Below are positions 4,845 to 52,582 of a stretch of 64,000 bases of DNA, in pieces (position 1 is the stretch's first letter; every line of letters starts with the position of its first letter). The translations under genes and the position numbers were made by a program. A model generated the notes under the pieces. The model did not search any database. It was given only the letters and a program-made list of their open reading frames with translations, and was not told the DNA's origin. The stretch covers positions 186,001 to 250,000 of IMG/VR virus record IMGVR_UViG_3300020202_000061; one strand, given 5' to 3'.

Positions 4845-4934
4845 GGAACTGTGTGTGAGTGGTTGAAACAACTCGCCTCCGACGCGAGCAGGCCCGCAAG
4901 GGCCTCGCGGGTTCGAATCCCGCCGGTTCCGCCA
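4845..4934 (+). tRNA. Ser-type (long variable arm, G73) tRNA with CCG anticodon
   Basis: GGAACTG/CGGTTCC-G-CCA, variable arm GGCCC-GCAA-GGGCC, loop CT-CCG-AC. Confidence 0.8.
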
Positions 4935-32698: not shown

Positions 32699-32776
32699 GG
32701 CGGTGTACTGCTTAGCGGCCTAAAGCGGGTGTCTCTAAAATACTGATCGCGGGTTCGAATCCCGCCACCGCCGCCA
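32699..32776 (+). tRNA. amber suppressor tRNA (CTA anticodon)
   Basis: GGCGGTG/CACCGCC-G-CCA; GGTGT-CT-CTA-AA-ATACT; own promoter at 32662. Confidence 0.82.
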
Positions 32777-39018: not shown

Positions 39019-39255
39019 ATGACGTTTACCCGCGAGCAGGTCGATGCCATCACCATCGGTACGATGATCACCAGAGGTATCGATGACCGTTGGAGTGATC
39101 CTCATCCGGTTGTGAGTATTCACGCCAAGCAAAATGACATCGAGGGCAAGCTGTTCGTCTGTGGTTACACCACCTACGGCGAAGATGCTCAGATGAGTTT
39201 CTCCATCAAGGAAGGCGATCCCACGGATTTTCGCCATTACAGGATCGGCGAATGA
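39019..39255 (+). CDS. hypothetical protein
   Basis: AGGAG RBS after promoter 38967. Confidence 0.6.
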   Translation: MTFTREQVDAITIGTMITRGIDDRWSDPHPVVSIHAKQNDIEGKLFVCGYTTYGEDAQMSFSIKEGDPTDFRHYRIGE

Positions 39256-40499
39256 CCCAACCCTTTCCATATCCAGTTCGCCGGGTACTGGCGCGTCTGA
39301 ACCACGCGGGGTTCGAGGCACGTGTGGCGGGCGGCGCAGTTCGTGATCTTCTGCTGGGCCAGACTCCGAAGGATTACGATGTGGCGACCACGGCACGGCC
39401 CGAACAGGTTGTGAAACTGTTCGAACAATGCGGGCTCCAGGTGATCCCCACCGGTATCTTTCACGGAACAGTCACGGTAGTTGTGCCGGACGATGAGCCG
39501 GGCACCCCGACGAACCTCGTCGAGAACGAGGACCTCCGTTTCATGCAGATCGAGATCACCACGTTGCGGGTGGATCGGGAAACCGATGGCCGCCACGCCG
39601 TGGTCGAATTCACCGACGACTGGGAGGCCGACGCCGCCCGCCGAGACTTCACGATCAATGCGATGTTCATGGACGCCGAGGGTGAGGTCTACGACTTCTT
39701 CCACGGCCAAGAGGACCTGGAACATTCGGTGATCCGGTTCGTCGGCAACGCGGATGAGCGCATTCAGGAGGATTACCTCCGTATCTTGCGATTCTATCGG
39801 TTCGCAGCACGCTTCGGCAACAACGACATGTGTCCGATGATGAGCGACCGCGAAGCTATCCGCCGGAACCTCGCCGGGCTCAAACAGATCAGCGGTGAGC
39901 GCATCTGGATGGAACTGACCAAACTGATCCGGTTGCCCGGCGCGAGCATGGCCCTCTACTGCATGTGCCTGGATGGTGTGCATGAGGCTATTGACCTGTC
40001 GATGATCCGGACTGCCGAGTTCATCAACATCCGTTATCATACGGATGATCCGATCACGTGTTTGGTCGGAGCTTGCTCGGCCGACCGTATGCCCCTGGCC
40101 GAGGGCTATCAAACCCTCATGGACACTCTGTGGCATCGCTACAAGGTCAGCAAGGTTGAGGTCGCCCGAGCCCAGTTTCTGATCGCCCATCGTGAACCGG
40201 GACGGTTTCAGTCGCTCCAGGACTATCTGCGGCTGATCACCCAGCAGGACCCGAAGAGCCAGGAGTTCGCAAAGGAATCCGCGCAGTTCCTGGCACTGCT
40301 GCATGATCGACCGGGGATTTCCACGACCATCGCGGTTTGGACAATCCCAACGTTTCCTCTGACCGGGAAGGACTTGATCCAACAGGGTATCCTGCCCGGC
40401 GCGGATATGGGCCGAATGTTGAAACGGGCCAAGGTCTTTTGGATCGATTCCCAATACACCCTTACCACGGAGGAATTGGTAAATTTAGTGAGAACCTGA
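39252..40499 (+). CDS. cca: CCA-adding tRNA nucleotidyltransferase (class II)
   Basis: GGAVRDLLLG..PKDYDVAT, RRDFTINAM, DYLRILRFYRF, SGERI. Confidence 0.9.
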   Translation: MTQPFPYPVRRVLARLNHAGFEARVAGGAVRDLLLGQTPKDYDVATTARPEQVVKLFEQCGLQVIPTGIFHGTVTVVVPDDEPGTPTNLVENEDLRFMQIEITTLRVDRETDGRHAVVEFTDDWEADAARRDFTINAMFMDAEGEVYDFFHGQEDLEHSVIRFVGNADERIQEDYLRILRFYRFAARFGNNDMCPMMSDREAIRRNLAGLKQISGERIWMELTKLIRLPGASMALYCMCLDGVHEAIDLSMIRTAEFINIRYHTDDPITCLVGACSADRMPLAEGYQTLMDTLWHRYKVSKVEVARAQFLIAHREPGRFQSLQDYLRLITQQDPKSQEFAKESAQFLALLHDRPGISTTIAVWTIPTFPLTGKDLIQQGILPGADMGRMLKRAKVFWIDSQYTLTTEELVNLVRT

Positions 40500-43638: not shown

Positions 43639-43722
43639 GCACGAGCCGTTCCTTGGAGAGATCAAGTGGCTGTAAACCACCCGGCTTCGCCTGAGTAGGT
43701 TCGAATCCTACCTCGTGCACCA
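43639..43722 (+). tRNA. tRNA-Tyr(GTA)
   Basis: GCACGAG/CTCGTGC-A-CCA; variable arm. Confidence 0.85.
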
Positions 43723-43727
43723 ATTAT

Positions 43728-43818
43728 GGGTTTCCTTCTTCACGGCGGTCTGTAAAACCGCTGGCGCAAAATCGAGTGAAGCGGATGCTGAGAGGTTCGA
43801 CTCCTCGGAAACCCACCA
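43728..43818 (+). tRNA. tRNA-Tyr(GTA)-like, lacking a D hairpin
   Basis: GGGTTTC/GAAACCC-A-CCA; only 9 nt in place of the D arm; 28-nt extra region. Confidence 0.65.
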
Positions 43819-43891
43819 AATATCGCAGGTGATTAGCTCCTGAAATTCTTAAAGGCGGGCCGCCAGGAGTCCCCCGCCGCCTGCACAGAAT

Positions 43892-43975: not shown

Positions 43976-44112
43976 ACTTCGGGTCGTTTGGATTGGGTTA
44001 TTGCTCCATAAGCACGAGGGTGTAGGTTCGAATCCTACTCTGCCGACCAATACCGGCAGATAGCATAACGGTAGTGCACGTAAAACATCTGGTCCGCCTT
44101 TTATCCGAAGTT
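43976..44112 (+). ncRNA. YrlA-like Y RNA / circularly permuted tRNA module, copy A
   Basis: CTTCGGGT(C)G/TTATCCGAAG bulged stem; T arm, TCTGCCG-ACCA-ATAC-CGGCAGA, then D arm. Confidence 0.72.
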
Positions 44113-44200: not shown

Positions 44201-44203
44201 CTA

Positions 44204-44339
44204 AACTCGGGTCGTTAGATTGGGTTATCGTAGCCCGTCCCCATCGTGGGTTCGAATCCCACTACCTGTCGTATGACGGGTATAGCCAAGTGGTTAAGGC
44301 AGGGACTTGTATAAACCAGTCGGCCTTTTTATCCGAGTT
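44204..44339 (+). ncRNA. YrlA-like Y RNA, copy B
   Basis: AACTCGGGT(C)G/TTATCCGAGTT; T arm, acceptor closed by GTAT, D arm, GGGAC/GTCCC stem. Confidence 0.72.
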
Positions 44340-52499: not shown

Positions 52500-52582
52500 T
52501 CCAGAGTTGCTCTGTCGGCAAGGGGCCGCTCGGCTTTGAACCGAGATTAGGGACGTAGGTTCGACTCCTACCTCTGGAACCA
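52500..52582 (+). tRNA. tRNA-Gln(TTG)
   Basis: TCCAGAG/CTCTGGA-A-CCA; CT-TTG-AA. Confidence 0.85.

Follow-up and report, generated by a model that had tools for sequence, protein, structure and literature searches.

A jumbo-phage tRNA-Tyr gene with a predicted D-stem relocated to the variable arm

The window analysed (64,000 nucleotides) covered bases 186001-250000 of a 347.5-kb IMG/VR virus record estimated to be 90% complete. ARAGORN detected 55 tRNA genes and one tmRNA in this record, of which thirty tRNA genes were located in the window, all on the + strand. A tight cluster encompassed, in order, tRNA genes for Phe and His, a canonical tRNA-Tyr, the candidate gene described here (91 nt), Leu, a Y-RNA-like element, Leu, a second Y-RNA-like element, and Leu. 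The elements of the candidate and its neighbour were distributed as follows (window coordinates).

43639..43722 (+), canonical class-II tRNA-Tyr(GUA), 5 nt upstream of the candidate and not part of it, called by ARAGORN and matching the Rfam tRNA model at 33.8 bits, above the gathering score
43728..43735 (+), 5' strand of the 8-bp acceptor stem (GGGTTTCC), pairing with 43807-43814
43736..43737 (+), two-nucleotide connector UU, where U8/N9 sit in a canonical tRNA
43738..43743 (+), CTTCAC, 5' strand of the helix replacing the D-stem (hereafter HD), pairing with 43776-43781
43744..43744 (+), junction purine (G), like position 26, facing U at 43762, which is like position 44
43745..43761 (+), anticodon arm with a 5-bp stem (GCGGT/ACCGC) and a 7-nt loop (CTGTAAA), anticodon GTA at 43752-43754
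43763..43765 (+), GGC, 5' strand of the variable-arm stem (hereafter HV), pairing with 43787-43789 (G-U, G-C, C-G)
43766..43775 (+), A-rich single-stranded linker of 10 nt (GCAAAATCGA) running from HV back to the base of HD
43776..43781 (+), GTGAAG, 3' strand of HD, inside the variable-arm loop
43782..43786 (+), CGGAT, including the conserved YGG (CGG at 43782-43784), a candidate stand-in for D-loop G18/G19
43787..43789 (+), GCT, 3' strand of HV, crossing HD and separated by GA from the T stem
43792..43806 (+), T arm with a 4-bp stem (GAGG/CCTC) and the canonical loop TTCGACT
43807..43814 (+), 3' strand of the acceptor stem (GGAAACCC)
43815..43818 (+), discriminator A73 and encoded CCA

A sequence-only reading of the window had pointed out a tRNA-Tyr with normal acceptor stem, T arm, GTA anticodon hairpin and ACCA, in which a short strand in place of the D arm was perfectly complementary to the extra region and was followed by GG. 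This observation was correct in each of its elements. Only about 9 nt (UU, 6 nt and 1 nt) were found between the acceptor and anticodon stems, so that the gene lacks the contiguous D stem-loop of a cloverleaf, while it displays an acceptor stem closed by a discriminator base and CCA, a T arm with a UUCRANY loop, and an anticodon arm with U33 and a purine at 37. An identical contig across 43705-43974 was present in an independent soil metagenome from another study, indicating that the sequence is not an assembly artefact. Two features were missed by that reading, namely the 8/4 rather than 7/5 partition of the acceptor/T branch (eighth pair 43735:43807) and the HV helix, which crosses HD and makes the fold a pseudoknot.

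Taken alone, the CUUCAC/GUGAAG complementarity was not beyond chance. Shuffling of the extra region gave a Watson-Crick helix of 6 bp or more with the 10-nt 5' strand in 6.4% of cases. The minimum-energy fold of the single sequence omitted HD and was 5.8 kcal/mol better than the proposed nested fold (-33.2 against -27.4 kcal/mol), with small hairpins and an anticodon stem extended to 7 bp using C43743. Only 30 of 76 family members displayed HD in their minimum-energy fold. Because these energy models cannot score the pseudoknot or tertiary contacts, thermodynamics alone could neither support nor reject the helix, which was shown to be real only by comparison with homologues.

Homologues were retrieved with a pattern made of the anticodon loop, a 30-45-nt gap (too long for any canonical tRNA-Tyr) and the T arm. 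The specific pattern gave 31 viral loci, as well as 44 loci in species-representative bacterial genomes, and a version with a relaxed T stem gave more than 119 viral loci. Parsing these loci gave at least 77 distinct sequences with one layout, from IMG/VR phage contigs of 50-640 kb and from bacterial genomes (tRNA arrays of Planctomycetota and Alphaproteobacteria, and chromosomal copies in a family sampled around Henriciella). The first relative seen (locus L002, loci being numbered with an L prefix) had CCCGCG/UGCGGG where the window has CUUCAC/GUGAAG. A search with the neighbouring cytidylyltransferase-like protein found no loci, and BLAST of the tRNA cluster against deposited phages matched only ordinary tRNA-Leu genes and never the candidate.

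Compensatory changes in the CTTCAC/GTGAAG helix among homologues, which the sequence-only reading had proposed to look for, were found at all six pairs. A covariance model built from two same-length members was used to align 76 distinct members. Across the whole structure, 96.5% of cells were paired, against 69.0% in shuffles and 42-55% when partners were slid, and the covariation score was 0.715, against 0.185 in shuffles and 0.12 or less when partners were slid. HD was 98.2% paired, the controls not being given per helix, and showed double changes at all 6 pairs (one column pair, for example, being CG 37, UA 15, GC 12, GU 6, AU 4). Although this alignment was fitted to a model containing HD, which favours pairing, a test free of that bias gave the same picture. 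Distinct pattern hits were chosen only because their 8-bp acceptor stem ends 14 nt before the anticodon loop, leaving no room for a D arm. All 72 such sequences had HD at 5 or 6 of 6 pairs and 65 were perfect, with 35 different 5' strands, while only 14% were perfect when strands were swapped between members. RNAalifold on the alignment predicted the same acceptor, HD, anticodon and T helices.

The remaining helices also covaried. All 8 acceptor pairs displayed double changes, with 98.5% of cells paired, and the eighth pair was never unpaired (GC 36, UG 21, UA 9, CG 7, AU 3). All 5 anticodon-stem pairs covaried, and the T stem comprised 4 bp, or 3 bp plus a mismatch in 14 members. HV, formed by the first 3-5 nt of the extra region and the 3-5 nt lying 2-3 nt before the T stem, was not in the covariance model, and its signal is thus also free of the fitting bias. 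It was 87% paired, with a middle pair of CG 33, UA 18, GC 11. All 76 members had a contiguous helix of 3 bp or more there, whereas 32% fell below 3 bp when partners were swapped between members. HV is the stem of a class-II variable arm, with one strand of HD inside its loop, but it is short and its support is weaker than that of HD.

Several unpaired positions were conserved across the 76 members. The connector was U in 56 and 65 members at its two columns, and the junction base was a purine in 66, facing mostly U or C, so that the commonest combinations were G-U (42) and A-C (11), as is typical of 26-44. The linker was 6-15 nt long, with a pooled composition of A 316, U 190, C 83 and G 69. 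After HD, Y was present in 75 members, the first G in 71 and the second G in 75. C74, C75 and A76 were encoded in 61, 55 and 57 members, respectively. The search patterns required CTGTAAA and most of the T loop, so conservation of these elements is partly by construction. The discriminator was A in all 73 aligned members with a CUGUAAA loop.

A decayed pseudogene, with a D-arm deletion, a variable-region insertion and a chance complementarity, could be suspected from the lack of an ARAGORN call, the Rfam score below thresholds, the absence of HD from the minimum-energy fold and the 6.4% of shuffles. This reading is contradicted by the covariation, by the shared layout of homologues from unrelated phages and two bacterial phyla, by the 35 helix strands that stay complementary, and by the identical sequence in an independent sample, and it is considered extremely improbable. 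It would require the family alignment to be an artefact, which the selection made without regard to HD argues against. An intron-containing or circularly permuted tRNA gene was rejected on topology, as no single excision or permutation of the observed order of strands gives a cloverleaf with both D strands 5' of the anticodon arm.

Indirect evidence was in favour of a working tRNA. The bacterial tyrosine identity set (PMC9976931), i.e., A73, G1-C72 and the G34-U35-A36 anticodon, was present in the window gene. Across the family, G1-C72 occurred in 75 of 76 members and A73 in 74 of 76, while GUA was required by the pattern. Members with anticodon GCA all had U73, the cysteine identity pair, in five sampled genomes of the family around Henriciella (twice beside a rewired Tyr gene) and in one phage contig, and one member with anticodon UCU had G73. 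A discriminator that tracks the anticodon is expected if synthetases charge these RNAs. Transcription, processing, charging and decoding were not directly evidenced, the RNA-labelled wastewater runs sharing words with the region covering only the canonical tRNAs of related phages and not 43751-43873. A promoter and terminator scan gave nothing above the shuffled background. Neither a TyrRS-family gene nor a Ro protein was found in this phage, so the host synthetase must be used.

The genomic context was also informative. Among 13 phage records at least 90% complete and carrying the gene, with otherwise broad tRNA sets, ten showed only the rewired gene for tRNA-Tyr, although the pattern could miss a canonical gene with an odd T loop. 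The other three, including this phage, had both canonical and rewired genes. In bacterial tRNA arrays of 30-36 genes (L048, L056, L073), the rewired gene was located between ordinary tRNA genes, and ARAGORN found no other Tyr gene in the part of the array that was fetched.

A decoy or inhibitor, which would not be used in translation but would titrate a host factor such as a tRNA-Tyr-directed nuclease, was the second inference of the sequence-only reading. The canonical tRNA-Tyr directly upstream means that in this phage the rewired copy is not needed to read UAY. Moreover, over-expressed tRNA-Tyr neutralises PtuAB toxicity, and the variable loop of a phage tRNA-Tyr is needed to inhibit Retron-Eco7 (PMC12673091). 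However, besides no other Tyr gene having been found in ten of 13 near-complete carrier phages or in the fetched part of the bacterial arrays, the features kept are those that synthetase, EF-Tu and ribosome need (12-bp branch, canonical T loop, 7-nt anticodon loop, A73 and CCA), and the switch to U73 exactly when the anticodon is GCA is expected for charging, not for binding a nuclease. A decoy is thus regarded as unlikely.

Viral carriers ranged from complete genomes of about 52-74 kb, some with terminal repeats, to records of 364, 385 and 640 kb. This phage had a single copy and one phage had two. In bacteria the gene was sparse, with a strong match in 9 of 101 sampled genomes of the family of Henriciella, 0 of 150 other genomes of its class, and 6 of 150 genomes of the phylum of the planctomycete carrier. 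Carriers included the isolates Henriciella aquimarina LMG 24711 and Tateyamaria omphalii KCTC 12333. The five carrier genomes checked also held a canonical tRNA-Tyr-type gene elsewhere (clear in four, less certain in Tateyamaria), and a role as core bacterial tRNA-Tyr was therefore rejected.

Some members were chromosomal, conserved as a Tyr and Cys pair and additional to the canonical genes in one bacterial family, which could suggest an aminoacyl-tRNA donor for a non-ribosomal reaction (peptide, cell-wall or lipid aminoacylation), the odd body keeping it out of translation. Dedicated non-ribosomal tRNA isoacceptors exist in other bacteria. In Henriciella and a second genome of the same family, the Tyr/Cys pair was located beside argG. 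No aminoacyl-transferase, cyclodipeptide synthase or similar gene was found beside the copies examined, whose neighbours were argG, DUF4238, DUF2147, a GNAT and a transposase. Phage and array copies sit among ordinary tRNA genes, and the T arm and T loop used by EF-Tu and the ribosome are canonical, so this possibility is considered very unlikely.

The best reading, held with fairly good confidence, is a genuine tRNA-Tyr whose architecture is not a cloverleaf. The analysis itself established the 8-bp acceptor stem stacked on a 4-bp T stem, giving the usual 12-bp branch that RNase P, the CCA-adding enzyme and EF-Tu read, the normal anticodon arm with GUA, the lack of a D hairpin, the pairing of nucleotides 11-16, which run straight into the anticodon stem, with six nucleotides inside the loop of the long variable arm, and the crossing 3-5-bp variable-arm stem, whereas the following spatial and functional steps were deduced. 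HD would stack on the anticodon stem through a 26-44-like layer (5 bp, one layer, 6 bp), resembling the long D stems of tRNA-Sec and allo-tRNAs. It would replace the D stem with swapped strand connectivity, the 5' strand lying where residues 22-25 lie and the variable-loop strand where residues 10-13 lie. The YGG leaving the top of HD would play the part of G18/G19 and dock on the T loop, closing the elbow of an L, before the chain returns through HV to the T stem. The 3D fold was not modelled, and a hint of this contact came from two related bacterial copies (L234, L235) with a non-canonical T loop (GGCAGUA) and AAG in place of UGG, a single evolutionary event and thus weak support. In this view, the host TyrRS charges the RNA through G1-C72, A73 and GUA, and the RNA then decodes UAY in translation; aminoacylation was not assayed. 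The interpretation given by the sequence-only reading, that the residual D strand pairs with the variable region and that the GG could stand in for G18/G19, was supported by the family-wide covariation, and its non-cloverleaf route to an L shape fits better than a decoy.

The predominance of Tyr versions could be explained, more speculatively, by anti-phage defence. Covariance model R2 scored Cys members at 67-68 bits and the UCU member at 59 bits, yet found essentially only Tyr versions in 50 viral records. A Cys-pattern scan gave 1 rewired gene among 118 hits, against 72 distinct rewired genes among 181 hits for the Tyr pattern, counts from the broad viral scans being lower bounds and ratios rough. 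The PtuA-PtuB nucleases of Retron-Eco7 and Septu target tRNA-Tyr and cut in its variable arm, at U47/C48 (E. coli tRNA-Tyr) and at C48/A49, while a phage tRNA-Tyr with a different variable loop is not cut, that loop being required for the escape (PMC12673091, PMC13096335, PMC11555353). As the variable-arm loop is here locked into HD, the fold may make this tRNA resistant to such nucleases, which would explain why phages and mobile tRNA arrays carry it. This step is entirely inferred, PtuAB having been studied only in E. coli, no such system having been looked for in the unknown host and no such nuclease having been examined. The boldest version, in which these genes form a previously unrecognised natural class of bacterial and phage elongator tRNAs (Tyr, Cys, possibly Arg-UCU), charged and used on the ribosome and spread because the buried variable arm makes them immune to PtuAB/Septu-type nucleases, is not excluded but is only tentatively entertained.

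A 2024 paper states that all known bacterial tRNAs are cloverleaves. This family would be a natural counter-example, located outside mitochondria, under clear purifying selection, and occurring in phages of 50-640 kb and in two bacterial phyla. Full-text literature searches, which left out most subscription journals and the supplement of the closest paper, found no description of this architecture, although prior description cannot be excluded. ARAGORN found 0 of 76 members (tRNAscan-SE was not run), and phage and tRNA-array gene sets therefore wrongly appear to lack tRNA-Tyr. The family offers a concrete structural route by which a phage tRNA could escape nucleases cutting the tRNA-Tyr variable arm. 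It also provides a natural scaffold showing how far synthetases, EF-Tu, RNase P and the ribosome tolerate a rewired tRNA core, useful for building orthogonal tRNAs.

By function-defining features the RNA is a tRNA, but it departs from the cloverleaf definition at the D arm, Rfam reports no match to its general tRNA model (RF00005), and Rfam 15 has no family for it. Canonical bacterial class-II tRNA-Tyr shares the GUA anticodon in a CUGUAAA loop, G1-C72, A73, encoded CCA, a stem at the base of a long variable region and a canonical T loop, but the rewired form has no D hairpin, an 8/4 branch and a variable-arm loop of 17-25 nt that supplies one strand of the D-stem substitute. The (8/4) tRNAs and allo-tRNAs of bacteria and alpha-proteobacterial phages (Mukai et al. 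2017, PMC5389517) share the 8-bp acceptor and 4-bp T stem, a long variable arm, a 6-bp D-type helix, occurrence in phage tRNA clusters and invisibility to standard finders, and an 8/4 tRNA-Ser(CGA) lies beside the rewired Tyr in L005, L009 and L012. Those tRNAs, reported for Ser, His and a few others, keep a contiguous D stem with a tetraloop 5' of the anticodon arm, whereas the two HD strands lie on opposite sides of the anticodon arm, and neither a Tyr species nor a D stem built with the variable loop was found in the text examined.

The best Rfam match was tRNA-Sec (RF01852), sharing the extended acceptor stem, the 6-bp D-type helix and the long extra arm, but at 30.3 bits against a gathering score of 47 and with an alignment skipping the D region. 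The anticodon is GUA rather than UCA, the discriminator A73 rather than G73, and there is no D hairpin. [quoted passage not shown] The mitochondrial forms are shrunken, have degenerate T loops and need co-evolved partners, while this phage and bacterial family is longer than normal (86-98 nt), keeps a canonical T loop, and replaces the D stem with a covarying helix instead of losing it. Finally, tyrosine-accepting tRNA-like structures of plant viruses (bromovirus TLS) use pseudoknotted, non-cloverleaf wiring in a viral RNA to present A73, CCA and tyrosine anticodon-like determinants to TyrRS (PMC9976931). A TLS is the 3' end of an RNA genome, is not used in translation, carries eukaryote-type C1-G72 and is not related in sequence, so that the resemblance is one in principle only.

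Other non-coding and tRNA-related elements were encoded in the same window as the rewired tRNA-Tyr:

43977-44112 and 44203-44337 (+), two paralogous Y-RNA-like (YrlA-like) elements
39252-40499 (+), a 415-aa ORF, probably a phage CCA-adding enzyme
32699-32776 (+), a tRNA with a CUA anticodon
43638-43724, the canonical tRNA-Tyr stretch matched by contigs from RNA-labelled wastewater runs

The two Y-RNA-like elements were interleaved with the tRNA-Leu genes, and each displayed a long terminal stem plus a tRNA-like module with a T arm and a D arm. Their scores against the Rfam YrlA family, 36.8 bits (43994-44110) and 19.1 bits (44244-44300), were both below the gathering score of 69, and no Ro/TROVE protein was found in the phage record. 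The 415-aa ORF harbored the poly(A) polymerase / tRNA nucleotidyltransferase head domain (PF01743, E = 6.8e-33) along with its RNA-binding domain, and was located about 3 kb upstream of the tRNA cluster. The tRNA with the CUA anticodon was called by ARAGORN and labeled 'Pyl', and may be an amber-suppressor tRNA in this phage. ARAGORN also called several unusually long tRNAs for class-I amino acids (window 4845-4934, 52500-52582 and others, as well as genome sequence G000 133337-133428), namely Arg-CCG (90 nt), Gln-UUG (83 nt), Ile-UAU (92 nt) and Thr (86 nt), the structures of which were not examined. Contigs from the RNA-labelled wastewater runs matched the canonical tRNA-Tyr, one of them with no differences, but stopped at 43724 and did not continue into the rewired gene, which could be explained either by the lack of the rewired copy in related phages or by these being short RNA-derived contigs.

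Rewired tRNAs of the same architecture were also obtained with other anticodons. Those at loci L060:2319-2409 (-), L233, L236, L237 and L256, as well as L348, carried anticodon GCA and discriminator U73, and were thus tRNA-Cys-like. They were distributed in five genomes of the bacterial family sampled around Henriciella and in one phage contig, and were found twice within 30-430 nt of a rewired tRNA-Tyr and next to argG. In another phage contig (L022:7970-8057 (+)), a second rewired gene was located about 370 nt downstream of the rewired Tyr. It displayed the loop CUUCUAA (anticodon UCU, Arg-like), discriminator G and a 3-bp T stem, and scored 42-59 bits with the two covariance models.

The rewired Tyr copies themselves showed some variation. 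In loci L234 and L235 (G009:C1:1931966-1932054 and G081:C3:3316706-3316794, respectively), the T loop was GGCAGUA instead of UUCGANU, while the conserved UGG following the D-like helix was AAG, a joint change that fits a GG/T-loop contact or marks decaying copies. Longer subgroups of the rewired Tyr family were found in phages of 88-640 kb (L003, L007, L008 and L017, 98 nt; L089, L100, L104 and L119, 95-97 nt). In these subgroups the linker was UA, the variable-arm stem was 4-5 bp, and the branch could be read as either 7/5 or 8/4. They scored 38-44 bits with covariance model R2, and the L003 group had no encoded CCA.

An 80-nt tRNA-like sequence at locus L289 (G139:C1:65811-65890) harbored anticodon ACG, a normal T arm and GCCA, but too few nucleotides for a D arm. 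It was not called by ARAGORN and scored 36 bits with R2, and although its pairing was not resolved here, it may be another non-cloverleaf type. A normal D arm was present in an 89-nt 8/4-type tRNA-Ser(CGA), located about 85 nt from the rewired Tyr in complete phages of about 70 kb (L005:3473-3561 (-), L009:1487-1575 (-) and L012:4085-4173 (-)). ARAGORN missed this gene in L005, the only copy tested, and it looks like the 8/4 tRNA-Ser reported by Mukai et al. (PMC5389517) in alpha-proteobacterial phages.
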